DNA of 64,000 nucleotides from Hyaloraphidium curvatum SAG 235-1 (taxonomy: Eukaryota; Fungi; Monoblepharomycota). The stretch's first letter is position 1, and each line of letters opens with the position of its first letter. Shown here one piece after another: positions 44,653 to 64,000 of the stretch. The notes beneath the pieces were generated by a model, which did not search any database, was not told where the DNA came from, and saw only the letters and a list, made by a program, of their open reading frames with translations. The stretch spans positions 618,030-682,029 of the forward strand of contig JAIVFI010000024.1 in NCBI GenBank assembly GCA_025558095.1. Reading direction: 5' to 3'. Made by a program: the position numbers and the translations under genes.

Positions 44653-47180
44653 ATGAAGCCGTCATTGCAAATGGACCCCCCTGACACAGGGCAGGGGCCC
44701 AATGATGCGGCCGCTCCCGTGGTCCTGCCTGATGGCAAGGTCTCCCCTGCGCTCGCCGCGGCCTCCTCGGAGGCGCTTGCGAATCCCGTCCACTCTTCCC
44801 ACGCTCCCGGCGTCGCTGCCTCTCCTCGCCTCCCTGGCGCGGCAGAGGAGCCCGCGCCGGCCCCCGCTGGTGCTACGGCTCAGCTGAAAGGTTCTAAGGA
44901 GGACGCTGCTGAATCGACCACTGAAATCCGCCCCGCGTCCGCCAACGGCGGCGCCCGGGAGGAGCCGGCTCCGCAGAATCGTCTCCCGAAAGCAACCGCC
45001 CCCGCCACGCGCCTGGGGTCTCGCTCTTTCGCCGCAGCAACGTCGCGCACCTCGCCCGACCGCCCGATTGTTCGTGTCACGGACGGCGCGATGGCGGAGC
45101 ATCTGGCTTCTGCCATGCCTTTCTCGGCGCCCACCAACTACGCCAAGCTCATCGATCGGGTGCAACCGCACGCCAACGGTCGGGGCTACACGCCGGCCTT
45201 CATTGGGCCTGTCCCCCACTGCCTCATCGACCTCAACGGTGTGCCAAAGGACCGACGGCGCGTCGTCGCCGAAGCCGTGGCGAAGGCGACCTTCCCCACC
45301 ACCGTCTTCACGACCGAGACGCGAGGCTACAACCCGCGTTACTCGCGACTGGACCTCTTCTGTGTTGTTGGTGCTGTCGACGGGGCAGACGCTATCAACG
45401 CCTTGGTGGAGCAGGGGGTGCTGGAGGTCAAGTTCCCAAACGGCCCGACGCGTCGGCTGCGCATCCACCCTGTCTTCAAGGACACGCACGCCGAGCTCAA
45501 GATCGGGCCCATGATCGTCCCTGGTTCGGTGCACGAGTGCCCGGACTGGTGGGCCCGCCTCTACGCGACTTTCCAGAACCACTATGGGGCCCCTTGCCAA
45601 GTCATTGAAGCGGCTCCCATCTCGGGCACCGACAGCAACGCCTTCTGGCGGGTCACTTTCGACGTCTCGCAGTGCGGGGTTGATGCCTTCTTTGACCGCG
45701 CAGCACGCATTGGCCCACCCTCGTACTGCTTCCTTGACTCGTGGGGGACACTCCTCCAGCACAAGCTCCTTCGCCCAGCTGTCCGCTATGACAGTAGCAA
45801 CGGACAGTGCGGCCACTGCAAGCGCACGGGCGGCCACGTCGGTGACGATGCCACGTGCACCAACTGTGCTTACTGCCCAGACGGTCTCAACCGCATGAAT
45901 CCCGGCGCCTTTGCCAGCCCGCAAGCACGCCGTGCGCACGAGGCGGACTGCATTCACAACCCGGCCAACGTACGGCTCTCTCCCCCAACGGTGGAGCCCG
46001 CCACGACCCCGCGGCTGCCCCCCCTGAGGGAAGAGGTCGTTCCTCCGCATCTGGCTTCCCCCACCGCCCCTGCGGCCGACGAGTGGCTTACAGCTGGGCC
46101 GTCCGGCAAGCGCGCCGGCTCTGCGCCCCCAGCTCTTGCCCAGCCAGTGGCCAAGGCGTCCCACAACAGGTTTTCGGCACTCGGTGGTGGTGGTGCCGGT
46201 GCTTTGGTCGATTGGGGGGAGTCTGACGCCGCCGAAAAGATGGATTTCCATGGTCTTCCCATTTTGGAGCCGGCTGACAAGGATGGGGACGAGGACATGG
46301 GTGGTGCCGACCAGCTGGCCGCTGAGAACGCCATCAGCAGTGCTGCACAGCAGGTTGCAGCCAATACCGCGCTGGAGGATCTGGAGCTTGCTGCTCCCGC
46401 AATGGAGGGCACGGAATCTGCGATGGAGGAGGATGCCACCGGCTCTGAGGCCTCGGGTGGAAACGACGCCGCCTCCGAAGCCTCTGCTGAGGGCGATGGT
46501 TCGAACTCGGAGGCACCAAGCGAAGACATGCACACGGCCGATGAGGCCGCTGGGGCATCCGCGGTTGGTGATCCTACGATGGCCCCAGGCCCCAAGCACG
46601 CAGGCAAGGGCCGTCCCGTGGAGGATGTGGCAGGGACAAACCCGGACAAGGTTGCCAAGCCGTATCAGCAAATCGACGTCAAATCCGCCAAAGCGGAACG
46701 GAAGGCCAAGGCGGCCGTTCGCAAGCTCGGCTCCCCCCAGGCCAAGGCCGCCTCCACGTCAACCGGATCCCTGCTGCCGGCTCCTGGCTCACCGTCCTTG
46801 AATGCCTAAAACACCACCAAGCAAGTGGCAACGCCGAGTAGTGGGCTGCTCTTCTCGGCGCCGAGCTCGTCCGGATACCTCCCGGGCGCGGTCAGCCCCT
46901 CCATCTTTTGCTGTTTTGCAGTCTTCACCGGTACGCCAACTACCACTATCTACAACGTCTCACCGAGTTCCGAGGCCGTTCGCGGCAGCAGGGGAGACTT
47001 CCGACATTGACCCCGCGTCCCCCGGGGCCCCTCGGCCAAATGCCGTGCCTAGCTTGGCCGAGGGTCACACTCTGCCCACGCCGCCCCGCGGCTCCTCCCG
47101 CTTGCCGGCACCAGCGGGGGGGAAAGGGGCGGCATGCTCGGAAGTATCTCCCTCCTCGTCATCGCAGATCTTGATCGCTG
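44653..47180 (+). mobile_element. LINE-like non-LTR retrotransposon 5' part: ORF1 (44653-46809) and interrupted start of ORF2 (46802-47180)
   Basis: Intronless 718-aa ORF with RSFAAA, a globular core, zinc knuckles (CGHCKRTGGH...C, CAYC...H...C) and an acidic tail. An overlapping ATG at 46802 opens a frame ending ...QILIA at the CACTA junction. Confidence 0.65.
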
Positions 47181-47433
47181 CCCTATGAGAAATTTCCATG
47201 GGAAAGCCCTGGGAAACAAATGGGAAAACCCGTCCCGCATGGGACTTGCATGGGAAAAGTGCTTGGACATGGGAAATCACATGGGCTGGCATGGGAATAT
47301 TCCATGGGGAGCCTAACCCCTAAGTCCGGAGAATGGGATTGGCCATGGGAATAGTATGTACCAGGCCGTCCAGACCCAGGTGGTTAGGGCTTGGAAGCAC
47401 AGGACATGGGCTGGACATGGGACGCCTCATGGG
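47181..47433 (+). repeat. Putative TIR and subterminal repeat array, 11 x CATGGG plus variants
   Basis: Counted directly. All copies are in the same orientation. Confidence 0.85.
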
Positions 47434-47732
47434 ATCCCTGAGCGACAGTGCACGAACTCGAAGAGTATCGCCTTGTTCATGACGTTCACTCACTGGCATT
47501 ACCATCCTAGAGGGGCCGCAGGCTTCAGATGGATGCGCATTCAATCCGTTCGCCATCTCATTGACATCCGTTTTGAACTCGTTTGAAATCTGTTTCATAT
47601 CCTTTTTTAGTCCGTTTTCTATCCGCTCGGGCATCCTCGCCCGTCTGCATGGATCCGCTCGTCCGATCGCAAGGTGGCGATCAGCCGAGGTCCGAACCGT
47701 TTCTCGGGTCCCGGATCTTGCCCACCGTGACC

Positions 47733-48809
47733 ATGTCGGGACGCGCTCTTCGGAGCTGCCCACCGGAGGTTCTGAAGGAAATCGCGCGTTTCCTGGACCC
47801 TAATGCGCGAGTCGCGCTCGCGAGCACGGGCAAGGAGATCCGCGCCGCGGTTTTGGACGTGGCCTTGCGGAGCGTCCGACCCCCAAGCTCGCGCACAGCT
47901 GCCGACTACTTCGATTCGGTGGTGCACGAAGGCACGGAGGAACTTATTCATGTGGTCACGAGGCACTTGACACTGGATCCCCAAGTTCCTTTTGGCAACG
48001 ACCCCGCCGCCCTTCACCCTGAGCTTCAGTTCCTCAAGATAGCCCTGCCGCACCTCCACAGCCTCGCCATCGGCCTTAATCCCTCATTTCGCGCGCGAGA
48101 GCTGCGCCTTCTCCTCACAAGGCACGACCCCGCGGAGCACCTAAGGCAGCTCACCCTCACCAACGTCGACCTCGCCTTCCTTCCGTCCCTCGGGATGTTG
48201 GAAGTGGTTGTCTCCCGCTTGTCGTACCTGGAGATTGGCGTAACCGGGGGCGCTAAAGTCCTGAAAGGGGTTCTGGGATGCGTTGAGAAGGCGCTCTTCC
48301 ACGGTCTCGGGTCGTGGGGTCTCCAAACATCGGAGAGAGAGCTTGCTTGTGAAATGCCCACTGAAGTGGCGCGTCGCTTGACGACGCTGAAGGCCGGGCC
48401 GCGCGTTTTCAAGCAGGTCTGCAACGCTTGTGGCGATTCGGGGACGGAGCTTCGGAGGCTCGCACTTTCGGGGATCTCGGGCTGCCGGAAGCTACTACGG
48501 GTGCAGAAACACGTGTGGTCGCTCGCGTTGCCGACCATGGAGTCTGACAACTACGCGAGGTTTACGCTTCCCAGGAACGTGGAGTACGTGGAGATCCAGA
48601 CAATAATCGTGTCATGCCGCAGTCCCATGCACGAGATTCCGGACAGCCACGTGCTTCCTGGCATTATGTCTTTGCGGAAGCTCAAGCGCGTGGAGGTGTT
48701 AGGGTTCGCGGTCAAGACGCTATCCGACCGAGCTTTGAAGCAGCGTGACCTCGAAACTCAGTGGTGGCAGGTGACTCTTCCGGCGCGTTTGCGGAATCGC
48801 ACTGTTTGA
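47733..48809 (+). CDS. F-box protein with LRR-like C-terminus
   Basis: LRSCPPEVLKEIARFLDPNARVALASTGKEIR, followed by LxxLxL repeats (LHSLAI, LRQLTL, LSYLEI, LRRLAL). Confidence 0.75.
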   Translation: MSGRALRSCPPEVLKEIARFLDPNARVALASTGKEIRAAVLDVALRSVRPPSSRTAADYFDSVVHEGTEELIHVVTRHLTLDPQVPFGNDPAALHPELQFLKIALPHLHSLAIGLNPSFRARELRLLLTRHDPAEHLRQLTLTNVDLAFLPSLGMLEVVVSRLSYLEIGVTGGAKVLKGVLGCVEKALFHGLGSWGLQTSERELACEMPTEVARRLTTLKAGPRVFKQVCNACGDSGTELRRLALSGISGCRKLLRVQKHVWSLALPTMESDNYARFTLPRNVEYVEIQTIIVSCRSPMHEIPDSHVLPGIMSLRKLKRVEVLGFAVKTLSDRALKQRDLETQWWQVTLPARLRNRTV

Positions 48810-49137
48810 AGTTGTCGGCATGTGATTGGGTGCAACGTAGTGTTTTCCAAGCGCAGTTGTGATAGAAAGCGAACATGTGCGGATCGCGAAACAGAATCTT
48901 TCCGGATCGCATACAGACAACAAGGTCGACAACGAACAGAAACCCTCAGGAAGTCATGCAGATCAATAGTGTGACACAAACGATAGCTCGCCATTCGTTC
49001 CGACATCTGGCCGACACATGAAAGAGTGTAATCATGGGCTTCAGTGGACTCACAACTGTGCGGGACGGGTCGGCGCAGTTTTGGAAAAAACACAAACACC
49101 TCCCATGCCCATGCAGAGCCCCAGGGAAACAGCGACC

Positions 49138-50271
49138 ATGGCAAAGACGCTGAACAGTTCAACTGAGCGCTCACGAGTGCTGCGGGCACGGCGGGCCGAG
49201 GAGCGCCGCCAGGTGCTGGAAAAGAAGCGCCTTCAGCAGCGCGCCCGCCGCGTGGTCGCACGGGGCATCTCGCCGCCCGTGGTCTCGGCCGACGGGACTG
49301 CCAGCGACACGGAAAATGGGGCTTCGACGGACACGCAGACGCCGGAGGCCTGGGATGGCCATCGAGCGTCTCCGGCCCACCAATTGCCCCGTTGCGCCCG
49401 CGCTCCTGGTGGCCGGGACCCGCGCGCTGTGCTGCAGGGACCTGCGGACGACCCCCGCCTGGTTGCGTTGCCTGCTGTCAACGAAGCCGGAGGCATCGGA
49501 TTCGGACTTTACGTCGCCTGTCCGTTGTGCCCAATGGCGCACTTCGACAGCTCACCGACGGCCACGTGGCGCACTAGTGCCGCCGAGGCGCAGCTGATCT
49601 TGCAGCGGTCCCTTTGTGGGCGGTCTGCCGCAGGCACCGCGTTCCGCAAGGGCGACGTGCTGGGCACCTACAAAGGAACCACGTGTGCGAAGAGCTCATG
49701 CGGGGACTATGTTCTTTTCATTCAAGCTTTGGGATTTTCGGTTGACGGGGCCAATCGAGGTTCCATCCTGCGCTTCGCCAATTATGCACAGGACCATCAG
49801 AAGCGCAATGCGGTGTTTTTGGGCAAGCCGGTCAAGGTGGAGAACCTTTGGGGGGCCCGAGTGGTCGCCTCGCGCAACATTTCCTACCATGACGAGGTTC
49901 TGCTTAACTATGCGTCGCCCGGTTTCATTGGGAACTCCATGGTCGCGCGGCTGGAACACAAACTTGACGAGAAGCCCACGCCGTGCAGGTTGCCGACACC
50001 GGTGGTGAAGGTACACCGAGTCCGGGACCCTGGTGACGGGTTCGGCCTGGAGCTCAACGTCACGCGTCAGAGCGCGTACGAAGGATGGGCACGCAGTGGA
50101 CGGCGCACCCGCAAACCGAAGCGGATCTGGATCCGCGAGAGCGAGGTTCCGGAGTCCGACGCGGAATCGCGAAGAGTGATCTCCGGCTTTCTGAAGGGGC
50201 ACCGGCCCAAGCAGCCGACTCGCGCAACATCCGCGAGGTTGTTAGGGAAGGCGAAGAAGATCGATGTATAG
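49138..50271 (+). CDS. SET-domain protein with C-terminal chromo-like segment
   Basis: GIGFGLY, FRKGDVLGTYKG, VDGANRGSILRFANY and VVASRNISYHDEVLLNY. These are followed by VVKVHRVR...ELNV...IWIRESEV...VISGF. Confidence 0.8.
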   Translation: MAKTLNSSTERSRVLRARRAEERRQVLEKKRLQQRARRVVARGISPPVVSADGTASDTENGASTDTQTPEAWDGHRASPAHQLPRCARAPGGRDPRAVLQGPADDPRLVALPAVNEAGGIGFGLYVACPLCPMAHFDSSPTATWRTSAAEAQLILQRSLCGRSAAGTAFRKGDVLGTYKGTTCAKSSCGDYVLFIQALGFSVDGANRGSILRFANYAQDHQKRNAVFLGKPVKVENLWGARVVASRNISYHDEVLLNYASPGFIGNSMVARLEHKLDEKPTPCRLPTPVVKVHRVRDPGDGFGLELNVTRQSAYEGWARSGRRTRKPKRIWIRESEVPESDAESRRVISGFLKGHRPKQPTRATSARLLGKAKKIDV

Positions 50272-50477
50272 GTTCTTCTTCCTAAAGTCTGCTTGCCTTC
50301 CGCATGCAGTCCGCTTTCTGTCCGCATCAACTCTGCATCACATCTACTTGGCGTTAGGTCGCCGGCGTCCAAACTAACCACCTCTCTGTGCACGTGCCTT
50401 TGGAGGTGTCTCTTAGAGACCCGTGGAGGTTCCAAAGAACCGATTCGGAAGGCGAGGGCGACGCAAAGTACGAATTG

Positions 50478-52449
50478 TTAAGAAAACATTTCGCCGGTCT
50501 CCGTAATGCCCAGCCAGCACCTAAGGTGCCCCATCCGTGCTTGCTCGTCGTCATATGTACCGCCTGCCACCCACTGGTCGAGGGCTATGTAATGATCAAG
50601 GCCGGCCTCCAAAGGGAACGAGAACACCTCTCTCGCGATGCCGTAGAGCTCCGGGAATCGCTCGCGGTTTTCCTGTGACAAAGGGTGCGTCAATCGGCCT
50701 TCCCAGGCTGCCCTCTGGCGAAACACTACGCGTCCTACCTTCCAATAGCCGGGGATGTCGATCAGTTCCTCGCGGTTGGCACTGACCGACTCGTTGATGT
50801 AGACCACGGCCTCGCTCTTGCCGTGGTTCTGCCGACGAGCCTGTACCGCGAAATCCTCGATATCTTGGAGATGGTTATGCCTAAGTGAAGCGCGCGGCTT
50901 GGTGTACGGACGCGCGGTGGCGACGGGAGCGGCGTCGTTTGTGATCGCGCTTGCTGCTGAAATGAGCATTTCCATGGCGGTCTTCTTGTACGATTCCAGT
51001 TGCGACCGGATGACGGCATGCTTTAAGGCGTCTTGGACGGCGGCAATCTTTCGGGACAGCCACGTGAGCCTCATGTTCGGGTTAAGCACTGCCCAGGACC
51101 GCAAGATCAATAGGAGCCCTCGAATGGACCAGTCGCGACAACGCTGCTGGAAGCTCACCCATACAAAGGAGGACATAACGCTCGTTCGATTCAATTGCAG
51201 ACTTGAGTTCCTTGTCTGCCGTACTTAGGAGCTCGGCAGCTTGCTCCAGCTGCAGTTTTGGGAGGTCTGCAAGGCCGCGACTCTTGGTCCGGTCAATCAG
51301 ATCCACTTGGGCATCATGCAATAGGACTCGTAAGTCAATCAGTGCCGCTGCAATGAGCCCGCGTTGATGTAGGCGTCGACCGTCGTCCCTCGGAGTGTCC
51401 CGCAGATCGTAATCTTGCACAGCTTCCCAAGCGTTGACGAGCGCTTGCCTTGGCGAGCAAGTGGTGAAACGAAAATCGAGTCAGCAAGCATCGACATGCA
51501 CGCATACCGCGCGCCCTCACGCACCGGAGATGAAACATAGTCGCTGGTGGCGGTAGGGAGGAGGTCGGGTAGGGCATGGCCTTTTGCGCTTTACGGACGA
51601 GCTCCCGCACCCGGAAGAGCCACGGCTTGATTCCGTAGCCGAGAAGCTCGAAGCGGTCATGCTCGAGGCGTGGGGTCTGCTGACCACTGAGGAAGCCAGG
51701 GGGGATCGCCATTGTAATTGTTACGATCTGCACGCGGGTCGTTTGTCGGTGACACAATGCGGGAGTTGCCCCAGCAGGGCGCGTGTCCTACTTCGTTCTC
51801 AAGCAGCGCCACGTGCCTGGCCAGGGGCTCGTCCACAATCATGCTCTTGATCATGTCGAACGAAACGCTCCCGTTGCGAGCGATTCGCTCGCCAACGACA
51901 GCCTGAAAAAGCTTCCAATCCTCGGACAAAAACTCGACCACGAGCTTGAGAGACGTTGGGTCTTTGACGTCCATTGCCGTACCGTCATCGGCGACGAACG
52001 AGACCAGGAGATGGCCGGAGCAGGTCTTGAGCAGGCTGGCCACGCGCCGATGAACCTCGCTGACCAGATCCGCCACAGTCGGCAGAGGAACGTCCTGGCA
52101 GACAGCGCGGATGAGGCCACGCACGGCTCCATTGTCCGGCGCGACATCCGACAGCCGGCGCCCCATCGACACGGCCAGCGAGAGCAGCGCCTGTTGCACA
52201 TTGTTGTCAGACTTTCGAATGGAACGGGATGAGAATCGGCCGCACTTTAACGAGATCCTCCTTGGTTCCGGCGGCGCGGGACTGTGCAATACCGCAGGGT
52301 TTCGGGGATGCGACAGCCGTGTCGCCGCTGCTGCCTGTGTGTGCTTCCTCGCCGAATTCGTCGACCTGACTCGTTTGTCGCGTTGGGCCAAGGGGGGGCG
52401 CCGCAGCCGCGCCGCCTTCTTCGCCGGCACCGTCCACCGAAGTAATCAT
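50478..52449 (-). CDS. Multi-exon protein ending in a hAT dimerisation-like domain
   Basis: After splicing it reads GYWK/ENRERFPELYGIAREVFSFP. The usual S...ER.FS motif is absent. The start is uncertain. Confidence 0.55.
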
Positions 52450-52663
52450 TGAACCGTTTTGTTGGGTGGCGAAGAGACCTACACTGCTGGTCGATGGGCT
52501 CCAAGGGAGTGAGGCGATCAGTGAAAACAGGGTTAGGAGTGAAAGCGGACTACATGCAGATCGCAAACAGACACAACTAGGACAAAACGGACTACAGTCA
52601 GACGGATAGCGGAGCAACGTAGCTGCGATATAGATTCCGCCATAGGCGTTCGGCAGCACATCG

Positions 52664-55600
52664 TCACACCGAATCCGGCTTCTTGATCCGCTTTTTGAGT
52701 TCCCTAGTCTTTTGTTTCCTCGCCGCACCCAGAACCTTCTCCCTTGCACGAGCTTCTGGACTCACATAATCCCGGGGATCAATCATCCAGTTGAGGTCGA
52801 GAATGTAATGCCATTCCCTGGCCATCGGGTCCGAACCCCAGTCGGTGGGCTCCAACGCGGTCGAAGCCACGGTCGGGTCACCTACCCAGCGCCTCAAAAG
52901 CCCGACGAGGCGGTCCAGGCAGGTGACAGGCACTAACATATGTTCCATGTGAGAGCCGTCTCTCTGAAACTGGAAGTATTTGATTCCCCACCCCGCCGCC
53001 GCGTCGAAACCGGCCGCCTTGATGACCGACATCCACGCAAAGGCATGCTCCTCGCCCTGCACTTCGTGCACGATGTAGTAATGCACGAAACCAAAACGTT
53101 CGACTCCAGGATGATCCGGATCGTCGAACGCAGCCATGTGGTTGAGGCGCCGTGTCCGGTTGATTGCCTGGACCCGGTGAGACACCAAAGGGAGCCGTCT
53201 CGCGGGCTTCCCCGAAGACATCACCGAGCCAAAAGTCGCCTTGCCCGGTAGTTCAAGCCTGGCAAACTGGCGAAAGGCGCGGGAGATGTCGTCTTTGGCA
53301 AGATACCCCCCCCAGGTGCCACCCTTTCGGTAGTATCGGAGGAGCGCTTTGATCTGAACCTTTTTGAGGCCCTACCGCCGTGTGCGGGGACGTTGTTTGG
53401 ATGCTTAGTGCCCCAGAAAACGGTTATTGCAACCAACCAACCTCTTCTTCCCGGTGTACCCGGTACGGCCATCGCAATTCGAAGCCTGTGCCGGTGTAGA
53501 TCTTTCCGAACTGTTTCCGCTGGAGCTTTCGCTGGTCGACGAAGGCTGTCTCCATTCGAGGGTCCATCTTCACCAGCTCAAGCCGAGTTTGGCCCTGAAC
53601 TTTGCCGGCCATGTCCGCTATGGGCGCCCGGCGGTTGTCGACCAATTGTTGCAAAACGTTGATCTTTCGCTCTGTTTGGAATTGGGACGTTGCCCACGGA
53701 GCCCCGTTACAATCGACCCGCTCCGCAAAATGCAGGAACGTGTGCAGATTGTACGTGCAGACGTCACCCATGACCTCCTCGGATCGATCATAGCACGTCC
53801 TGAGCAGCAGAGCGAGGTGGGGGCGGCGGGTGCGTGTTACTGGTAATACTAAATGCTGAGAATCACGCACCCACCCCTCGCGCCAGAGAACGTATCTTAA
53901 GCAAGCCTCGTGCAAAAGACCGGTATCCACGCGGTGCTTCGCCGTGAGCTGTCCAATTCGAACAAGCCACGCGATGCCCTCAAAGTCCTCGGGGAGCAGG
54001 CGATCATGGAGGAGGGGAACATAGTACAGTTTCAAGAGGGTGAACCACTCCTCCGTCTTGTACCCATTCTCGTGGACCAAGCTGCGGGGAACGCGCCCGA
54101 AACAGCTTGGGAGGAGAAGCGCCGAAGCCACGATATCATGGTCCATCTCCTCGATCTGACGAGGTGTCAGACGGCATCTGGCGGATGGAGTGTCCCTGGA
54201 GTTGACGGCCGTGTTGTACTCCTGCGTCGTCATCCCTTGGCAGTGGTGCGAGGAATCCGTGATGTGGGTGGGTTTGACGTTGATCTTGTGCTTCTTGGCC
54301 ATCTCCTTCGCGAACTTTTTCCATTCTTTCTTCCCCATCTTCGGCTTCAGTGTTCTCTGGTAAAGGCGTTGGACGTTGCCAGCAACCTGGTGCATCCGGT
54401 CGTACGCGAGGCAGTGCGGAAGCCGCATCGCGCCGAACGCAGTGCGCGTGACCGGGAGACCCTGATTCGAGAAGCAAATGTCGAACACGGAGCGACGCAT
54501 GATACCTGCGGTACCAGCAGCAGCAGGAGGCGAGCGCCAAGTCAGGTACGCGAGCTTATCTCGCCGCCGCCGGTGCACGCACCCGTTTCCTTCTGGATCT
54601 TGTCAATTGCCGCTTTGGGAGCCTCAAGTCGGGCGTACGTCGAAGCATACGTCTCGACAGTGTACATCGGAAGGTTCTCCGGGTCGTAGTCGATCCGGCC
54701 TCCACGCTTCCCGTAGGCCTCACTCAGCTTCACGTTTGCCACGTCCGGCAGGTGAAGGCACGGGCACCGCCCGTACCCAACCAATCCACAGAACATACAA
54801 GATACGGTCGCGTTGTGTCCCCGAGACCCTGCCATCTTCTTGATGTGCGGCGCATCTGCTTGCACCATGTACGCGTGGCCGCGCATAGTAAAAGTGACCC
54901 CGTCGGACGCATCCTTGACCCCGGGCACACCTTCTGCCAGCTGCTGCAGCTCCTCCCGCAGCGGGCGGATGACCGACTCGTGATCCCACTTCATCCCACC
55001 GGGGAGGAGCATGCAGAGGTGCTGACCACCATCAACAGTTCGGATGCCGGGCGGGAGGTTGGATATCTTGGCAAGCACGGGTTCGAACGTGTTCTTCGCC
55101 CTGTTATTGTGGTCGGATCAGTCCATCCACACGGATTGGATGGTAGGATGAACTCACTGCTTGAACATTTCGGCGGGATCACCGCTGATCTCGAGCCAGA
55201 CGGTGCGGGGATCGAGATTTCCAGAGTCGTCATTCGCGAATCCTTCGTCGATCAGTCGCTGGAACTCCGTTCCGTCAAATACGTCCCCAACGACACGGCC
55301 TGCTGCTGGGCGCTGCTGTGACGGCTGTGACTGCGGCTGCGGCTGCAGTTTCTGCTTTCCCTTCCCTTGTTTTCCCCCCTGACGCGCATGTTCCTGCTCT
55401 CGCTCGGCAGCAGCCTGCTGCTGTTCGATCTCGTGCTGCAACCGCCCCAACATCTCGGTGAAATAGCCGTACCACCATTTGAGTTCTTTAGCCCGGCCCA
55501 AGTGGCCGAACATGGCTCGCAGGACGGGGATTATGGGGAAGTAGAAAGCGTACTTGTGTGCTGTACCAGTGTCTCCACGGCGGTCGGAAGGATGCCTGAG

Positions 55601-56656
55601 GTATCGGGCAGCTTGGCAGATGGGGCAGGCAACGGCCTTGGCCAAGTCCATGCCACTCCTGCTGTCAATGCCATGGAAAAGTACGCATCCGTTGCGGCAA
55701 ACATGATGTCCTGTGGGTAGCGCAATAAGGAGCCGATCACGCACGGTAGAGAGAGTGGTCTCACTCTCGTAAGCATAACCCCCCGAGAGTGCGGCAAGCC
55801 GCACCCCGGCCATGTAGCGGGACACCGATGCATCACCGAGAAGGTTGGTCATGAAGTCGGTGTAATGGTCTTCTGTCCCTTTGTATTCCACGTGAAGCCG
55901 TTCCGCGGTGAGAAATCGTATTACGTGCTCGTCGGACTTGAAGCTCGGGTGAGCCGTCTGGATGGAACCGCTGCCCTGGAAAGAGAAGAAAAAGTCCTTG
56001 GCATTGTCCGCCGCTGCTTCCTCCTCCCTTTTCCGGTGTTCCATCCGCCGCCGATGCTCCTCTTCGTTTGCCTTCCTCCAGTCCTCCTGGGATTCCTCAA
56101 TTCCTTGAAGAAAGGCCTCATCATCGCTTCCGTAGTCCGATTCTGCGAAATCCGACTCGTGGAAATCGTTCAGTTCCGCGTCGGGTTCCGTGTCTGAGTC
56201 TGATTCCAGTGCAGAGTCGGATTCCGATTCATGTGCAGATCCGAAGGCAGAGTCCGAAGCAGACGTCTCGGATCCACTATCCGCAAAGTCGGAACCAGCC
56301 GTCTCGTTTGTCTGGCCCGCAGGCGTGGTCACGTCCGGAGCCTTTTGCGCCGGATCATGGATGGGAGAAGGGTCGGCGACCTCGCCGGGGGGCGACGGTG
56401 CAAAGTCATCAGCAGATGCACCCCACGTAGAGGCTGTGAGGACTCTTCGCTCGGCGGAATCGTTGGTATAGTGTTTCCGTGAAAACCACGCTTTCGCCGA
56501 GAAGTGCGTCGCCAGGAGATCACCAAGGGCCGGATCCCCGTCCGCGAGGGAGCCCCACTCGTGGCACACGCCTCTCTCGTTCACGTGTTTCTTGATGGTT
56601 CTATTCAGATGGGCATGCGTGCCACGACAGCCTGAACAAGGGCACCGGCTTCTCAT
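52664..56656 (-). CDS. CACTA/EnSpm transposase (Transposase_21 / DUF4218-type), multi-exon
   Basis: CPCSGC, CRNGC..CPICQAARY, YFPIIPVLRAMF, DVFDG, ISGD, NLPPGIR, RPLREELQQL, ADAP..KMAG..GHNA...CMFC, DRMH, GYKTEEW and HTFLH...GAPWATSQFQTER. Confidence 0.93.
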
Positions 56657-56788
56657 CGGTATCAGCGCACAGAAAAGGGGTCGGATTGTGTGCCTCGAGA
56701 AAACTAGCGCCGGCCGACGAGAATGTGAAACCTAGCCTCAAACTGGTAGGTTATGGGATTGGGAAGCAAAGCGGATGGCAAGTAGATA

Positions 56789-57581
56789 GTGAGCAGATCA
56801 AAAGCGGACTCCATGCGGACACAAAACGGTATCGCAGCGGATCGCGTCTTCGCGGGGCTCGCCAAACAGACTCTGGTTCTCTGGAAAACTATGTCATCCG
56901 AAACCTCGTCACCGGCGGCGGTCGGCCCGGCCGAGCGTCGCCGGCTCCGCCGCGAAGCCGCTGGCAAGACCGCGGGCGCGCGTTCCGGCGACGAAGAGGA
57001 CGCGGAACCGCCGTCGAAACGGCGGCTCAGGAAAAAGGAGACGGCTCCCGACGACACGCAGACGGACCTTGAGCTGGCGTAATTTTCCCGACTTGCGCCG
57101 AACGTCTGCTGCGCTTGGTGGCAACGCCCCCAAGGAGGCCGCCCGACCGGCAAGCAACGGCAGCCGCGGCTCGAAAGCGGCAGTTCCAGGACCGGCCGGG
57201 CCGCGGCGCTCTGATCAACGCGGCCGGGCGGTGGCCACGGTGAGCCGATGGCTGGATCTGGCAGCGGTCGACGACGACGCGGGACCCGGCGCGTCCCCGG
57301 GTGATTCGGCCTACGAAGACACCCACGAACTGGACACGTCCTCCCCCGGAGAGGTGGGCTCCCCGTGGCGGAACTCGCCCTCGTTCCACCGCGAGCTGGA
57401 TGCTCGCAGGGCAAAGGAGGAGGCGAAAAGAACGCGGGACGATCAACGGCAGGCGCGTTGGGGGCGCGGAAGCCGCTCCACACGAGGCGCGAGAGCCTTT
57501 GGCACCGGCGCCCCGCCGTACCTCCCCTCTTCCGATGGAATCGATCGGATCTCATCTTCTGCGGCAAGCAGCCTCGATTGA
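56789..57581 (+). CDS. Low-complexity hypothetical protein divergent from the transposase
   Basis: Charged ORFs with an NLS-like PPSKRRLRKK, probably joined by an intron near 57079. Confidence 0.35.
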
Positions 57582-57928
57582 AAGGGAACCCGCTGCGCCG
57601 GGCACGCCAGCCCTCGTTGGGGCGCAGCACCCGCATCGACGGACAGGTTGGCGAGCCACGCACGGTGGCCATCGGCATAGGCAAAGCAAGCTAAGCTACA
57701 TTGTTGGTTATACTCCCTGTACAAATAGGATTACCCAACAAGTTTCGTCGGACGTGTTCTGGGCGCCATCTGCTGTGATTCCACGTCGCGTTGCCCCGCA
57801 TCGGTTCGGTAAACGCTGCCACCAGAAGCCGGACGACCATGGTAGCCAACCGAAAGCATCTCCCGGATTGGGCACACCCTCCTGCGAATCAGCAAGACGA
57901 TTGCAGAGGTGCCAAGGGGGAGCCTACC

Positions 57929-58831
57929 TCAGATGATGTCCAACACTATGTCCTTTACCAAATGGTGCCTGTACTTGGGAACTTCGCTCTGCCTGATCCC
58001 AGCGCCTTTGTACCATGCCTCCAGTCTCTTTTGAACGATTGCTGCATTCCACGGACCCCAAGTGTGGGGCCCTCCTCCTTCCAAGGTGAGCGATGCGAAC
58101 AGCTCGACGTGGGCCATAGCAAACACCATGCATGCAGACCCGTCGAGCTGCTTGGCGTCGCCGACGTCCAAATCAATGTCCAAGTACGATTCCTCCTTCG
58201 CCACCTCGTAGCCCTCGATGCGGAGGATCGAGTGCACCACCTGTTCGACGCCTCTGGCATCCCGAAGTACCCCTGCCCGTGAACCAGACCGCGAGAGGAG
58301 ATCCAAAGCGAACGTGAAGGTGCCCACTCGTCCCGTGCCGGCAGTTGGGTCGAAGAAGTGGGCCATCGACGCGACAAAGATCCAATGGGACCTTTCCTTG
58401 ACAAAGAGCGGCGCGAGGAACATCCAGCAGCGTCGTGAAATGGCGAAGCGCGTTTCGCTGCGCACATGCTTCTCTTCGCGGCCGACGCCGTGCTCGTATC
58501 CCTTCGCGCGCATGTTCTGGCGGACGTATCCCTCGACGCCCACCTTCCGCCACGCTTGGTAAGCGTTGCCGGGGTTCCCCGCGGAGATGTCGACGGCAAA
58601 ACGGGTCAACTGCCCGTCGAGAAACACCACTCCGGGAAAGTACTGGGCCCTGCGCTCGAGCCACCGTTGGTAGGCTTCGTCGCCTAGCCAGGTCTCGGGC
58701 TCGAGGGGCCGCACGAGCTCCGAAACCCCAGGCTCCCGGGTTACCTTCGTGAAAACGAATCCAGTCACTGCGCCCCTTTCGTCGGCACCTAGTCCCCGAT
58801 CCCAGGGTTCGTTCCACCGGAAGTTCGCCAT
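57929..58831 (-). CDS. Ulp1-like (C48) cysteine protease
   Basis: WLGDEA, APLF...SHWIFV, ALDLL and KQLDGSACMVF give the H-D-Q-C order of Ulp1/SENP proteases. Confidence 0.72.
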   Translation of the reverse strand: MANFRWNEPWDRGLGADERGAVTGFVFTKVTREPGVSELVRPLEPETWLGDEAYQRWLERRAQYFPGVVFLDGQLTRFAVDISAGNPGNAYQAWRKVGVEGYVRQNMRAKGYEHGVGREEKHVRSETRFAISRRCWMFLAPLFVKERSHWIFVASMAHFFDPTAGTGRVGTFTFALDLLSRSGSRAGVLRDARGVEQVVHSILRIEGYEVAKEESYLDIDLDVGDAKQLDGSACMVFAMAHVELFASLTLEGGGPHTWGPWNAAIVQKRLEAWYKGAGIRQSEVPKYRHHLVKDIVLDII

Positions 58832-58986
58832 GGCCCCAGATGGTACGTCTCGAGAACCCGACCTTAAGAATTTGATGTGTCGTTCGTTCGCTGCTCATCC
58901 CTTTTCGTTCCCTTTCCATTCTGCTTCTTTCCCGCAACCGGCTTCTTTCCCGCAACCGGCTTCTTCCTCCGCTCGCGCTCGACGCG

Positions 58987-61121
58987 ATGCCCCCCAAGGG
59001 TGCCGCGCCCGCGCCGGAAGCAACGACGCCGCCGCAGCGGCGCCCGAGGCCGCGGGTCCGGGACGTGGTCACCCCGGGTGCCGGGTGCCTTCTCCTGCAG
59101 CGGGTACGCGCGCGAGACTCGCCTCCGGCTGCCACTGCAGTCTTTGAACATGCGTCTATACGGGTGCGCAGACCAACCGGCCCCCACGTCGCCCAGTCGA
59201 AAAGCCAAGTCCAAGCCGCATGCGAACGCGTCGCTCGCGGTCAAGGCGAACGCGGCCCAAGCAGAAGAAGGCCAAGTCCAATCCTCGGGAGGGTAAGCCA
59301 CGGCCAACAACGGCGTTGCGCGCCGTCTAACGCCTTGTCACGACCGGCAGAGGACCCGTCAGGCGGGCCGCGCGAGCCGACGGAGCCGGCCAACGCGGTC
59401 AAGAAGACGAAGGGCAAGGGCAAGCAGAGAGAGGGTTAGCCACGCCCACAGCAACGGCGTCGCGCGCTGTCTAACGCCTTTGTCACGACCGGCAGAGGAG
59501 CCCTCCGGCGGCCAGGACGACCCGAGGATCAGGCCGTCCCGGCGGACGAACCGGCGAACGCGCTCGACCTCTTAAAAGCGACGCTGGCGAGGCAGCTCGC
59601 TAGCAAAGAAGTTGAACCCTGCGACGTTCCCGAAGCGGCCGGCGGCGGCCCGCACCCGGACATCGTTGGCCTGTTCGACTACGTGGGTGTCTCCGAGATT
59701 CCCCAACGAAGCTAGGCCACCACTGATTTCGCTGCTAGCTCGCCGAAATCACTACAGACTTCGACACCAAGGCTTACGCGGCATGGATGAAGACCGAGTT
59801 CAAGCACAAGCGAGTCCGGTTGGGCAGGTCTGGATGAACGGAGGGCGAAAGCCATCTCGCAGGTGGGCTTCAGTAAGCGGTGCCTTCCGGCGGCGGCCAA
59901 TGACCTTCCCTTGCAGCACATCGACAACTACAAGAAGGAGCGCAGCAGCAAAGTCATCGAAGAGCTGGACCTGCTATACAAGGCCGCTGATAGTCGCGAG
60001 ATAGTCAGCAGAAAGTATGGGGGCCAGCGGTATTTCAAGGCGCCCGGTGGTCCGTGCGGGCGGGCCGGTGCGCCCCATCGTTATGGACTTTTTCAAGGAT
60101 GTGGGTGTTCCACGCACGGACCCTTGGACCGGAGCGGGGCCATGATTGACTCCGCTGCCAGCTCCTCGAGCTCACGGACGATGCCGAGATGGCCTCTTGG
60201 CTGCAAGACGTCGTGAGGCAAGTTGGCGTCGGGCGAGACGGTGGTTTCGGGGGTGGACGACGACCAGCAGAAGGCCATCTCGAGGTGGTTTTCTGGGCAG
60301 CGTCCACCGCCACGGGCGGCCACTGACTCCGTTTCCTTGCAGCACATCAAGGTCTACAAGAAGCGGCTGTTGGATGACGACCGGCAGCTCCCCGGCCCCC
60401 CGCCGGAGGAGGACTCCGAGGCGCGCGCCGCGACGCCCCCGGTCGTCGCCCCGCAGCCGCCGCCGGAGGACGACGGGCAGCTCCCCGACCCCCGCCGGAG
60501 GGGGACTCCGAGGACGAGATGAAGAGCTCCGCGGGCCTGCTGTGGCAGAGCCGCGGAAGCGGGGCCGTGGCAAAGGAGGGCGGGGGAGGGGACGGGCCTT
60601 TGAGACTAAAGCCAAGAAGCCGCGTGTCCGGGGTAGGCTTACCTCGAACGGCGCCGAGGACGGACGCATCTAACAGCATTTACCGTCCGGTGGACAGATG
60701 TGTCGTCTGCCGGCAGCGCCCCGAAGCCCCCAAGGCGACGAGCACGCGCACGATCCGGAGCCGGCGTCCAAGAAGGACAAGGCCAAGGGCAAGGACAAGC
60801 GGACGCACGAGCAGTCCGAGGGATGAACACAAGACGACGAGTAACGCGCCCTTTCCGGGGCCGGCATCCAGAAGCACAGGCCAAGGGCAAGAACTTGAGA
60901 TTCCTCGAACTCAACCCGACCGTAAGTCCTCGTCCCTCCGGCACGCTTTGGCAAGACCGCTCATGCAGGAGACGTTCTCCGTTGTAGACGGACCAGCTGC
61001 AAACCCACGTGCAGTCGCTTGATATCCCGTACCGGCTCCTCCTCAAACCGCAGATCAATGCATCGCCGCTCGGGTTCTTCGCCTTGAAGAAGGCGACGCC
61101 CGACAAGCCCGACGCCAAGGA

Positions 61122-61156
<35 letters not shown>

Positions 61157-62243
61157 ACGGGGACGGGGGCAACGGGGACGGGGTCGGGGATGGAGATGGG
61201 GTCGAGGAGCACGTTTGCTTCGTGGTCGGCTGCCAGACGCGGTACAGTGGAACCAGCCAGTTCCACGCCCACCTCCTGTCGGCACACGGGATCAGCTCAC
61301 GGGACATTCTCCGGTCGTGGAGGGTGAACTTCGGCGTTGTCGAGCGCACCGGAAGGGTTGGTTGGGACACTTGCTATCGATCTGGCGTTCTTGACCAGTC
61401 GCGTGGCGCATCAGGAGAGCGAGCTGACCAAGCTGAAAGCAGAAGATGTCCCTGAGTGGTGCTATAAGGGCTGTCACGCCGTCGCAGGCATGTCTCCGTG
61501 GGCCGCGCATCACGACCCGGCCCGCTTGACTGACAACTTGGCGCCCGAAGGCGGAGCTCCTGACGGCGGCGCTCGACATCACCGATCACGTTGCTCTGGA
61601 CGCGAGCAGCAAGGTCGTGTACACCATCGACAAGTTCGACAAGCCCGTGGACCCGCCGTTGCCATCCAAGGTCGTTGTCCGGCTACCGAACATCGAGGAG
61701 ACGGACGGGCGAGTCTTCTTTCGCCTCGTGCTGACGCACCATATGACCATCGAAAAGGTTATGGGTTTCCTGCTTTGCACCGGCGGACCTCCGCATTGAC
61801 GCGAATACTTCCAGATCGTCGAGATCAACGAGACCGAGGTCGCTTTGATTGGGATGGTCACATACCCTGGCGCACTTCTACATCTCGCGAACGAATTCGT
61901 CGCCAAGTACGACACCCCGAGCGCCCGCCCGACGCGACCCCGGTGCAGGTAGAGGTTGGGCTCGACTACGTGTTCAACGATTCATTCGCGACCCACTGCT
62001 TCCGAGTACGTCATAGCGCGTTGGTGCCTCACCCGGCAAGTTTCCTAACCCCTTTCCCAGGTCACAATTACCGCCGAGACAAGCTGGCTATTCCCGGGCT
62101 TCGAAGTCGACCTCGAGGAGCCGGCGTTCCGGGTGGTAAATGCCAAAGGGCTCAGTATTGTTAGCTTTCGCGGGCGACGGAAAGCAACGAGGAATGAGGG
62201 ACGATCGCTTGCGCGTGCGATCAACTTGTACGAGGATGATTAG
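58987..62243 (+). CDS. Large multi-exon hypothetical protein (possibly more than one gene, or frameshifted) with a C2H2 finger
   Basis: MPPKGAAP start, an internal repeat KAIS..FS...LQHI..YKK, a DG repeat, and CFVVGCQTRYSGTSQFHAHLLSAH. Several GT-AG introns. Confidence 0.45.
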
Positions 62244-62538
62244 GTGTCTTTTCGTACCGTGCAATGGCAAGTAGACGGTCTTTCCTTTGTCCGACCGAAA
62301 CAGAACTAATGTGGACTGAAAGCAGATGCAAAGTGGACCAGTGGCAGCTAGCAAACGGACCTGGCCCCCGAATCGTTTATCCAAAGCGAGATGAACGTAG
62401 ACATACTTGATTGGCCGGAAAGGACGCCTTTCACCTCCCGCACTTCCTCTTACGGATCCCGAATTCGGCGAATTGGCGCGCGGCGCTTTGGCGTGAGTCG
62501 CGCAAACCGTCCGCGCGACCACACATCCATATCCCGGA

Positions 62539-64000
62539 ATGACCGCCGCTGGATCACCGTCCTCCGGCGCGCCGTCGGCAGTCAGCGGCGCGCCGGCCCA
62601 TGCGCCGCTGATCCAGCCCTGCTTGGCGCTTCTCAAGGCAATCCGTCTCGGGGGCACCAAACAGGCCGCACACGCCGCTAAGCTTGCAGAGCTCACCCGA
62701 GGCTCGGAGCTCGCGCTCGGTGGTCAAAGCGCATTTGCACTGCCGTTTTGCGAGGTCTTCCGGGCTCTTGATAGCGAGCTCCAGACGGTCCTCGCGGATC
62801 TCGCGGAGTGCTGCGGTGCCCTCGTCCGGGAGGACCCACGGGTGCCGGCAGACCCGCTTGTGGGCAAGATCCAGCTCCTGCAGTCAGCTTTTGATTCAGA
62901 AGACTGGCCTGCGGCCTTCTCTGCCACCGAGGATCTCGTCACAAACAAAGAGCTCTTCGCTTTGGGGCAGCATGCTGCTGCGCTTGCCGCCTTCGACGAG
63001 GTATTCGCTCTGCTGGGCCAGCACGCATCCGAACAAGCGCTCGATATTATGGTCAAGCTTGTGGACGTTTGGGAGTACCGGAATCGCGCCGAGTCCTCAG
63101 AAAGCCTGGGGAAACCCTCCTCTGAGTCGGATTCCGTGGCCGGCTCCCAAGACCCGCTCCCCTTCACCTCACCGCGCTACAGCGGCGCCGCAACCATGTA
63201 TCCGTTCGCTAGACAGGCCGTGGTCACCGCCCAAATGGTGGAGGACGCACCCTCGAGCATGGAGCCGCAGTGTGAGACCCCGCGTGTTTTCGCTGTCACA
63301 ACTGCTGACGTCGCTGTCCCCGTATCAGTCACCGCCGAGGGAATCATCTGGCCCGACTTCTTCACGCTCCGGAAAGCGAGTGCAAAGGAGGACACGGAGA
63401 AGCAGGGGGAAACGCTGGTCATGATCCAAGACATCTTTGCAGCTTTCCATCCGACACCCGACTTGGCCGAGCTGAAGGGCTACATCGCCAAGCCGCGGTA
63501 CAAGACGCGATCTGCGCCCAAAGACGGCAGAGAGAACGGCACTGATACTGGGTATGTGCCGTGCAAGGACCAATGGATTGCAATTGGAGCGTGGATGTTT
63601 TTCGCGTGCCTCGACGAGGACGAGAAGGCAGCATTCGTCTTCAACATCAAGGCTGTGATGGTGCGTTATGCGATGGAGGCTGCTCGGTCTTTGCGCAGTC
63701 TTCTGACTGATGCCACCGCAGCAGGTTTCGCGGGACGAAATCGGAAACCTCTTCAATGACTTGCGGGACGAAGACGGCAATCTTCCACAAATGAAACACA
63801 TGAAGATCAGCGGCGCGGGGCCGAAGGTTGTTCTCTACAAGAACCGCTTCCAGACCTACGTCGGAAACGTACGTGAACCCAGTGCAGGCGGACTTGGCCA
63901 TATGGATGCGGACTGATCATTCGATCGTTCTCGCTGCAGATGATCAAGAGCTTCCCGTATTTGGCATTCTACGAGGACGCCTGGATCCTGGCAGTGATCC
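62539..64000 (+). CDS. Hypothetical transposon accessory protein, continues past the window end
   Basis: A 406-aa ORF plus probable downstream exons (EIGNLFND..., IKSFPYLAFYEDAWIL). Confidence 0.55.

Follow-up and report, generated by a model that had tools for sequence, protein, structure and literature searches.

The last 16.8 kb (positions 47181-64000) of a 64,000-nucleotide stretch of the Hyaloraphidium curvatum SAG 235-1 genome (C24:618030-682029, hereinafter the window) contain a gene for a predicted tnp2-type transposase, flanked by open reading frames (ORFs) for a SET-domain protein, an F-box-like protein, a Ulp1/C48-like protein, one or more putative derivatives of a hAT transposase and a protein with a C2H2 finger (Table 1). 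A preliminary description of this DNA had taken the region for a candidate giant CACTA/EnSpm transposon with a chromatin, ubiquitin and SUMO toolkit as its cargo. Comparison of the copies in the genome indicates that these genes belong, in all likelihood, to a 19.4-kb DNA transposon of the EnSpm/CACTA (CMC) group, autonomous and recently active, of which the window shows the left 16.8 kb; at least five accessory genes are found only in the element. On present evidence, it is one unit bounded by terminal inverted repeats (TIRs) and not a cluster of separate things, because its layout is identical in all copies, its internal segments have no extra copies elsewhere, and the inverted repeat that it contains lacks a flanking duplication.

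Boundaries and copies of the element

At window position 47181, a repeat resembling a long interspersed nuclear element (LINE) gives way to the element, which starts with CCCTATGAGAAATTTCCATGGG... (CCCTATGAGAAATTTCC...). The CCC terminus and the 11 CATGGG repeats that had been noticed here are confirmed, the hexamer occurring 11 times within the first 253 bp, far above expectation (Table 1). The first 280 bp of the element occur three times in the 31.9-Mb assembly, on contigs C24 (the window copy), C22 and C26, and the three upstream flanks differ from one another. From the left end on, the copies are collinear, with 99.4-99.8% identity over 16.8-19.3 kb, and their boundaries are sharp and identical at the three unrelated flanks. 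The window copy extends for 16.8 kb, without a right TIR, as previously noted, because the window stops at the end of contig C24; the C22 copy extends for 19.3 kb, and the C26 copy is complete (19,402 bp, C26:94687-114088).

The right terminus of the complete copy, ...CCCATTTCCTTTCTCATAGGG, matches the left terminus, inverted and complemented, at 12 successive bases without a mismatch, so that the TIRs of the element are 12 bp long (CCCTATGAGAAA...TTTCTCATAGGG). An inverse terminus preceded by CCCATG repeats and followed by the remainder of the LINE had been predicted to lie downstream, and this prediction proved nearly exact: 15 CCCATG motifs, in inverted orientation, are present in the last 360 bp of the element (about C26:94.7-95.05 kb), and beyond the terminus the same LINE resumes. 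Elsewhere in the 19.4 kb, CATGGG is found only three more times, one of these inside the right subterminal region. A genome search for the exact 17-nt left terminus in inverse orientation yields no match, since the inverted part comprises only 12 bp, and the right end was found by comparison of the copies. No derivatives of the element ends resembling miniature inverted-repeat transposable elements were found in the genome.

Table 1. Features of the element in the window and at its left border.
Feature	Position in window	Strand	Remarks
Putative target-site duplication CTG (3 bp), left copy	47178..47180	.	comparison with uninterrupted LINE copies
Left TIR CCCTATGAGAAA	47181..47192	+	12 bp, no mismatch to the right end of the C26 copy
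Left subterminal array, 11 CATGGG	47197..47433	+	expectation ~0.09 per 300 bp
F-box-like ORF (putative)	47733..48809	+	N-terminal CPPEVLKEIARFL... motif, leucine-rich remainder; GC1/2/3 0.63/0.46/0.71, coding type
SET-domain gene (P0001, 377 aa)	49138..50271	+	SET core about aa 110-260
SET motif GIGFGLYV	49492-49515	+	
SET motif LRFANY	49768-49785	+	
SET motif YHDEVLLNY	49885-49911	+	
Putative hAT-transposase-derived gene(s)	50478..52430	-	ORFs 51660-52430 and 50481-51224; intron 50673-50738
Antisense spliced transcript piece	50984..51473	+	GTAAGT..AG intron 51330-51395
Predicted tnp2/CACTA-type transposase gene	52664..56656	-	Pfam, motifs, predicted introns
Transposase exon 1	56656-55158	-	Cys-rich Transpos_assoc-like N-terminus; first D at 55163-55186
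Transposase intron 1 (57 nt)	55101-55157	-	predicted; GTGAGT donor
Transposase exon 2	55100-54583	-	second D at 54845-54862; CMFC at 54788-54799
Transposase intron 2	54506-54582	-	predicted
Transposase exon 3	54505-53424	-	HTFLH at 53730-53744; QTERK at 53664-53678
ORF	52667-53371	-	further 3' exon of the transposase, or separate ORF
Ulp1/C48-like ORF (P0002, 300 aa)	57929..58831	-	putative His 58376-58390, Asp 58343-58357, Gln...Cys 58121-58150
Multi-exon gene(s), basic, low-complexity	58900..64000, continuing past the window	+	C2H2 finger 61216-61294; 406-aa ORF 62539-63759
19-nt motif TCYGCATGYAGTCCGCTTT	50299..50317	+	4 matches in total vs 0.06 expected, all inside the element
19-nt motif, further matches	52542-52560, 52584-52602, 56801-56819	-	

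Target site

The retroelement into which the element is inserted (window 44653-47180) is characterized by a 718-aa ORF1, a 283-aa ORF that is cut by the element, and a 1303-aa reverse transcriptase ORF. Beyond the right end, contig C26 continues with CTGATGCCCCGG..., part of a LINE repeat, with the same 1303-aa ORF, that has at least 25 copies at ~99-100% identity, and given this similarity among the copies, the LINE family is very recently or currently active. In at least nine uninterrupted copies, the empty site reads ...GATCTTGATCG CTG ATGCCCC. The left flank in the window reads ...GATCGCTG|CCCTATGAG, i.e., ...GATCTTGATCGCTG|element, and the right flank on C26 reads CATAGGG|CTGATGCCCC. Because the uninterrupted copies and these two flanks match up, the left flank of C24 and the right flank of C26 appear to belong together as left and right half of a single LINE target, with a 3-bp target-site duplication (TSD), CTG, compatible with the duplication of 2-3 bp that had been predicted to follow the right end.

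The left flank of the C26 copy is of another family: it is a subtelomeric repeat, which in its intact copies reads on as ...GTCCTC|GGCGGCGGG, so that the two flanks on C26 are different repeats that do not match each other. Most probably, C26 is a chimeric join via near-identical 19-kb copies, which would leave C24 truncated and one right end missing from the assembly, or else it reflects a real recombination between copies. The distribution of variants agrees with the chimeric join: private differences between C24 and C26 are confined to the first 1.7 kb, and beyond that point the two copies are identical save for one-base indels in the tail of C24.

The C22 copy (C22:687045-706339) is located at the very end of a chromosome. 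Here (TTAGG)n stands in place of the final 66 bp of the element, the right TIR among them, and makes up the last 135 bases of the locus C22:702001-706474, as would result from telomerase healing of a break within the element. Long (TTAGG)n arrays are found at four contig ends (C5, C33, C27 and C22), and the telomere repeat of this fungus appears to be the pentamer TTAGG; the usual fungal telomere repeat is the hexamer TTAGGG. In addition, the locus C17:726013-730386 contains two inverted copies of the subtelomeric repeat together with ~29 TTAGG and 14 CCTAA units and is explained either by an interstitial head-to-head telomere junction, left from an old fusion of chromosome ends, or by an artefact of the assembly.

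The transposase and the placement of the element

The transposase is encoded on the minus strand in three ORFs (55157-56731, 54545-55117 and 53427-54602) in which the GC content of the three codon positions (GC1/2/3), ~0.62/0.45/0.70, is of the coding type for this genome. A Pfam search with the middle ORF identifies Transposase_21 (tnp2, PF02992; E-value 9e-6, 25.4 bits against a cut-off of 28.6), and the N-terminus of the protein is similar to Transpos_assoc (PF13963; E-value 9e-4); these two domains are CACTA-specific and are found here in the expected order. Short GT..AG introns can join the three ORFs, and both of them interrupt the tnp2 domain. These introns are predicted, the only observed introns of the element being those at 50673-50738 and 51330-51395 in the hAT-like region. 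Exons were searched singly and not as joined spliced models, so that the scores of domains split by introns, i.e., tnp2 and the hAT dimerisation domain, are lower than the mature protein would yield. The motifs LEISGDPAEMF, NLPPGIR, QADAPH, CMFC, YDRMHQ, HTFLH and QTERK, read from the sequence, follow each other in this order and yield the arrangement D, D, C(2)C, H(3)H, E, which PMC12730594 reports as characteristic of EnSpm, Mirage, Chapaev, Transib and allied groups. Within the ORF at 52667-53371, positions 52955-53097 are covered by a contig of the one sequencing run, guessed to be RNA, from which all evidence of transcription comes. Beyond the three element copies, the genome contains no further copy or detectable paralog of the transposase. 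A word-based homolog search with a transposase exon, a query short for the length window of that search, retrieved no other protein.

The combination of transposase features, the 3-bp TSD and subterminal motif arrays places the element in the EnSpm/CACTA (CMC) supergroup, albeit with atypical termini. Thus, the complete CACTA transposase of the preliminary description holds as a tnp2-type enzyme, as suggested by the sub-threshold Pfam matches and the motifs, whereas the ends of the element are not of the CACTA kind. They also differ from the termini of Plavaka elements (TGT..ACA or CATCA..TGATG), with which the length of the TSD is compatible.

The SET-domain protein

The SET gene is present solely in the three copies of the element, which encode 100% identical proteins. 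A word-based search for homologs of P0001 retrieves nothing beyond the protein itself, and an exhaustive HMMER search identifies 14 remote homologs with E-values from 4e-16 to 6e-4. In the alignment of this family, the motifs G.G, Y.G, GDYV, DA..GS..R..N, N and H.E...Y are invariant or nearly so. The Pfam SET profile (PF00856) matches P0001 alone with an E-value of 0.047 and weakly touches 4 of the 15 family members. A search of the PDB started with the profile of the family identifies SET methyltransferases only, namely, LegAS4 (2e-6), a histone H3 methyltransferase of a bacterial parasite, yeast SET1 (6e-5) and EHMT2 (1e-3), followed by EZH2, NSD, MLL and SETD8.

The AlphaFold model produced with the family alignment has a pLDDT of 82 and a pTM of 0.77, whereas the model from the single sequence, including the chromo-like tail, is unusable (pLDDT 31). 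Among the Foldseek matches of the former model in the PDB with E-values of at most 1e-3, all 42 are SET or PR domains, each with a probability of 1.00; the shape matches in the Atlas are, likewise, all SET or PR domains, and the Atlas language-model features also assign the protein to SET (score 0.93). The Asn that is predicted to bind S-adenosylmethionine (in LRFANY) and the C-terminal Tyr (in LLNY) align with those of LegAS4, and the GIGFG motif is present. The canonical His after the Asn is replaced by Tyr (RFANY), a position at which LegAS4 also lacks His (RYINFS). Given the agreement between the remote homologs, the family profile, the fold comparison, the Atlas features and the motif residues, we consider the identification of P0001 as a genuine homolog of SET-domain lysine methyltransferases, with the predicted cofactor-binding and catalytic residues in place, to be solid. 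The earlier assignment of a SET domain is thus upheld, whereas that of a chromo-like 'reader' half was not substantiated, the tail following the SET domain having no match in Pfam or in the PDB at an E-value of 10.

The 14 relatives (P0003-P0016) come from clusters of metagenomes and public sequencing-run assemblies. One of them (P0005) adjoins a gene of the DVNP (dinoflagellate/viral nucleoprotein) type, and the Atlas cluster nearest to P0001 belongs to Nucleocytoviricota; both observations hint at circulation of the SET subfamily in giant viruses or protists. The genomic contexts of the five relatives examined contain no transposase, and therefore the subfamily cannot be called transposon-associated elsewhere.

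Other accessory genes

Similarly to the SET gene and the transposase, the F-box-like, hAT-like and Ulp1-like ORFs are each confined in this genome to the three copies of the element, and no host paralogs of these accessory ORFs or of the SET gene were found. None of the ORFs scanned against Pfam matches a housekeeping family, in agreement with the preliminary description.

For the Ulp1-like ORF, Peptidase_C48 is the annotation of 27 of the 30 Atlas clusters nearest by language-model features, with a top score of 0.96. The protein contains the residues SHW...FFDP...Q-LDGSA-C-MVF, in which His, Asp, Gln and Cys follow the order characteristic of the C48 family. A pattern of this catalytic order, written after the sequence had been seen, is matched, among 752 ORFs, by this ORF and a true host Ulp alone, and by none of 20,000 shuffled sequences. 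On the strength of these sequence features, the ORF somewhat more probably than not adopts the fold of CE-clan proteases; the Ulp1-like assignment is thus retained as a lead from the Atlas features and the catalytic order and is not matched by any search with hidden Markov models (HMMs), with BLAST or against the PDB.

The N-terminal 58 aa of the F-box-like ORF yield sub-threshold similarity to F-box (PF00646), F-box-like (PF12937) and F-box_4 (PF15966), with E-values of 0.008-0.014, which weakly suggests that the ORF encodes an F-box-like protein. This is the part of the original F-box/leucine-rich repeat (LRR) assignment that persists; Pfam scans of the whole ORF list no LRR family, and no search was aimed specifically at LRRs.

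The hAT-like gene is represented by a spliced minus-strand transcript that spans positions 50452-50899 and includes a 66-nt GT..AG intron. With this intron removed, ...DIPGYWK is continued by ENRERFPELYGIAREVFSFP..., a sequence that resembles the beginning of a hAT dimerisation domain. Dimer_Tnp_hAT matches the 3' exon, the only part of the gene with such a match, with an E-value of 0.23, the domain being split by the observed intron and the exons having been searched unjoined. Other hAT-like motifs were recognized by eye, namely, ADDGT...EDWKL and LNPNMRL in the upstream ORFs, and YWK|ENRERFPEL. No hAT catalytic core was detected in these ORFs. With the hAT-dimer-like feature of the preliminary description amounting to this match and motifs read by eye, there is weak to moderate support for a catalytically stripped derivative of a hAT transposase. 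The block is transcribed on both strands, with a plus-strand spliced contig antisense to the minus-strand hAT-like ORFs. The possibility of a nested hAT element was rejected because there is no TSD around the block.

A 19-nt motif is found exclusively inside the element (Table 1). Its minus-strand copies are located 110-170 bp upstream of the start codons of the hAT-like and transposase genes, and the plus-strand copy is upstream of the region with the plus-strand spliced transcript. The motif is a candidate shared cis element, i.e., a promoter or binding element.

The plus-strand gene or genes at the right side of the window show no family match in the scans apart from the single classical C2H2 finger (C-x4-C-x12-H-x4-H), which accounts for the C2H2 gene noted previously. 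The window copy contains ~20 one-base indels at positions 59080-61917 that break the plus-strand ORFs and are absent from the other two copies. These indels more probably reflect errors of the consensus close to the end of the contig than decay, so that the ORFs of this segment are better read from C22 or C26.

Age of the copies and alternative explanations

The copies diverge from each other by ~0.2-0.6%, and in each copy long enough to include them the F-box-like, SET, hAT-like and Ulp1-like ORFs, the transposase exons and the 406-aa ORF remain intact; their GC1/2/3 is of the coding type. Together with the ~100% identity of the target LINE itself among at least 25 copies, the low divergence and the intact ORFs point to very recent transposition. 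Repeat-induced point mutation was considered and rejected because the private substitutions of the C22 copy mix transitions and transversions.

Several results weigh against a recently active EnSpm/CACTA transposon with functional cargo. The termini are CCC...GGG, neither CACTA...TAGTG nor CA...TG, and both Pfam matches of the transposase are below the gathering cut-off. The two sides of the TSD are located on two contigs, the left one on C24 and the right one on C26, and hence depend on C26 being chimeric or recombinant; a single right end is assembled, and no second right terminus is present in the assembly. The 20 coding differences among the copies comprise 14 nonsynonymous and 6 synonymous changes, which is roughly neutral, and with so few changes the ratio of nonsynonymous to synonymous rates is uninformative and gives no sign of selection that would keep the cargo. 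The SET and F-box genes are not covered by any contig of the one run that holds this stretch; of the transcript and selection checks that had been proposed, the former gave spliced contigs for the hAT-like region and none for these two genes. Finally, PF02902 misses the Ulp1-like ORF even at an E-value of 10, its genome-wide search detecting three host Ulp genes and not this ORF, which also lacks a match in Pfam, in a PDB sequence search, in BLAST and word-based searches, and in BLASTP against a host Ulp protein.

The accessory ORFs could be functionless passengers, captured or formed de novo in the manner of Pack-CACTA elements and intact only through the youth of the copies. We deem this explanation unlikely: it is compatible with the near-neutral change among the copies, with the lack of a significant family match for most of the cargo ORFs and with the lack of contigs on the SET and F-box genes, but the genome offers no host paralogs as a source of transduplication, the ORFs are long (300-420 aa) and show coding-type GC at the codon positions, the hAT-like gene is spliced, and the SET protein retains GxG, RFxN and the catalytic Tyr, which are invariant or near-invariant in its remote family. 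It is even harder to reconcile the data with a composite structure, i.e., a CACTA-type element invaded by others, e.g., a 2.3-kb hAT remnant at 50287-52572, such that some of the cargo would consist of nested transposons. A 37-nt imperfect inverted repeat (81%), the only one inside the element, does bracket the hAT-like block, in which hAT-like motifs and the faint Dimer_Tnp_hAT similarity are found. However, no 8-bp duplication adjoins the arms of this repeat, the 19-nt motif that forms its core is also located upstream of the transposase start, at 56801, as expected of a cis element used repeatedly and not of a TIR, the genome lacks any further copy of the hAT-like protein, and the three copies share an identical layout, all of which makes this possibility quite improbable.

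Least probable of all, and indeed barely credible, is an explanation without any transposon, in which a subtelomeric block was duplicated and spread as chromosome ends recombined. Sharp, identical boundaries at three unrelated flanks, perfect 12-bp TIRs with inverted motif arrays, an encoded transposase and the precise interruption of a LINE, with a 3-bp duplication as judged against many empty sites, all contradict this explanation. No flanking sequence beyond the TIRs is seen to be common to the copies. The appeal of the subtelomeric explanation comes from the telomere repeat that caps one copy, the subtelomeric repeat family at the left flank of another, and the mutually non-matching flanks on C26. 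The interpretation of the region as a single transposon with cargo is, in contrast, consistent with the TIR-bounded, collinear copies and with the co-occurrence of the cargo ORFs and the transposase in the three copies only. The observations that had been named as potentially fatal to this interpretation were not made: the right TIR exists, the cargo genes are not single-copy host genes, and the missing TSD around the hAT-like block leaves no sign of a nested element.

Relationship to known transposons

The element resembles plant En/Spm (CACTA) transposons in the tnp2-type transposase with a transposase-associated, Cys-rich N-terminal region, in the 3-bp TSD and the short TIRs followed by short-motif subterminal arrays at both ends, and in the presence of several genes in an element of 10-20 kb. 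It differs from the plant elements in its termini, CCCTATG instead of CACTA, in its host, an early-diverging fungus, and in the addition of SET, F-box-like and hAT-derived genes. Some plant CACTA families, known as CACTA-ULP, contain a ULP1 protease domain (Benjak et al. 2008, PMC2528002), whereas the protease-like gene described here is a separate ORF that is invisible to the C48 HMM and has no host donor.

The giant Plavaka elements of red algae, which belong to the EnSpm superfamily, carry a cassette of accessory genes, PAG1-3, that includes a SET domain (bioRxiv 10.1101/2025.02.11.637652). The similarities extend to the size (17-19 kb), an EnSpm-superfamily DDE transposase next to several accessory genes, one of these with SET, the repeat arrays proposed to serve as binding sites for accessory proteins, and the proposal that the cargo modulates chromatin for the benefit of the element. 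In Plavaka, however, SET is fused to an N6-adenine DNA methylase, whereas in the present element it stands alone and is accompanied by C48-like, F-box-like and hAT-derived partners; the Plavaka cassette also has a ParB-like/2-oxoglutarate oxygenase protein, and neither this protein nor the N6-adenine methylase was detected in Pfam scans of the ORFs of our element. The fungal Plavaka elements have termini TGT..ACA (PlavakaA) or CATCA..TGATG (PlavakaB) and TSDs of 2-3 bp (PMC12730594). Fungal EnSpm, Plavaka and KDZ transposons carry TET/JBP dioxygenases that are thought to aid escape from silencing (Kojima 2025, PMC12730594). These elements share with the present one the supergroup, epigenetic enzymes as cargo, C(2)C and H(3-4)H motifs, and TSDs of 2-5 bp, but they encode a dioxygenase of the DNA demethylation type and reside in Dikarya, as opposed to a methyltransferase of the histone type in Monoblepharomycota; Pfam scans of the ORFs of our element detect no TET/JBP gene.

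According to Kojima and Jurka (Repbase Reports 2014), as cited in PMC12730594, HarbingerS and MuDR elements of Phytophthora carry SET genes. Judging by this description alone, they are similar in that a DNA transposon encodes a SET lysine methyltransferase as an accessory protein, and differ in superfamily and in the kingdom of the host. SET genes have also been described in Helitrons, and ULP domains in plant CACTA and MULE elements. Outside transposons, LegAS4/RomA of Legionella and viral or minimal SET proteins are the closest solved relatives of the SET protein by profile (best E-value 2e-6, for LegAS4) and by fold, although the identity is ~16% and the protein of the element has no ankyrin repeats. 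By analogy with these proteins, P0001 might be viewed as a short, stand-alone SET protein made by a genetic parasite to rewrite host chromatin.

As the preliminary description stated, transposons may carry Ulp1 genes (plant CACTA, PMC2528002) and chromatin modifiers (fungi, PMC12730594); it considered the present combination to be undescribed. The exact combination was indeed not found in the literature searched, but its parts have been described separately: SET cassettes in giant EnSpm elements, TET/JBP in fungal EnSpm/Plavaka and ULP in plant CACTA/MULE elements. What was not found in this literature is the host lineage, the CCC termini, a stand-alone SET protein of a small divergent subfamily, and its combination with C48-like, F-box-like and hAT-derived genes.

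Proposed mechanism and implications

The element would move in cut-and-paste fashion, whereby the tnp2-type DDE transposase acts on the 12-bp TIRs, cuts at the CCC termini and, upon insertion, produces 3-bp target duplications. The CATGGG arrays could be binding sites for an element-encoded DNA-binding protein that bridges the arrays, with the plus-strand C2H2 protein as the obvious candidate, by analogy with TnpA of En/Spm. The SET enzyme, in analogy to LegAS4, its nearest solved relative, may methylate a chromatin protein, and the protease-like and F-box-like proteins may act on ubiquitin-like modification of host proteins. The accessory genes would thereby alter host chromatin or protein modification around the element, keeping the copies transcriptionally competent or disabling silencing factors. 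The preliminary description had inferred a self-encoded anti-silencing system. It is reasonable to suppose that these genes serve to protect the element from heterochromatin formation, and there are published parallels in VANC/KIU of VANDAL (PMC13317346), in the TET/JBP cargo (PMC12730594) and in the Plavaka PAG genes (bioRxiv 10.1101/2025.02.11.637652).

A more elaborate version appears unlikely: a layered counter-silencing kit, directed jointly at the heterochromatin machinery of the host, in which the SET protein would write an activating or protective histone mark on the copies of the element, the C48-like protein would strip SUMO or another ubiquitin-like modifier from silencing factors, the F-box protein would send a host silencing factor to the proteasome, and the C2H2 and hAT-derived proteins would direct all three to the CATGGG arrays. 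If true, no eukaryotic DNA transposon before this one would have been shown to have an anti-silencing system of several enzymes.

With this element, the EnSpm-superfamily transposons that bear accessory genes now extend to early-diverging fungi. Few transposons carry chromatin enzymes of their own, and hardly any of these has been tested. The element described here is a tractable system, with three near-identical copies whose main ORFs are intact where reached, in a 31.9-Mb genome, with exact ends and an empty site, and with a stand-alone SET protein whose fold is confidently predicted and which lends itself to direct assay. It thus provides a concrete test bed for the question whether histone methyltransferases, and possibly SUMO/ubiquitin-pathway proteins, that are borne by transposons shield these elements from silencing.

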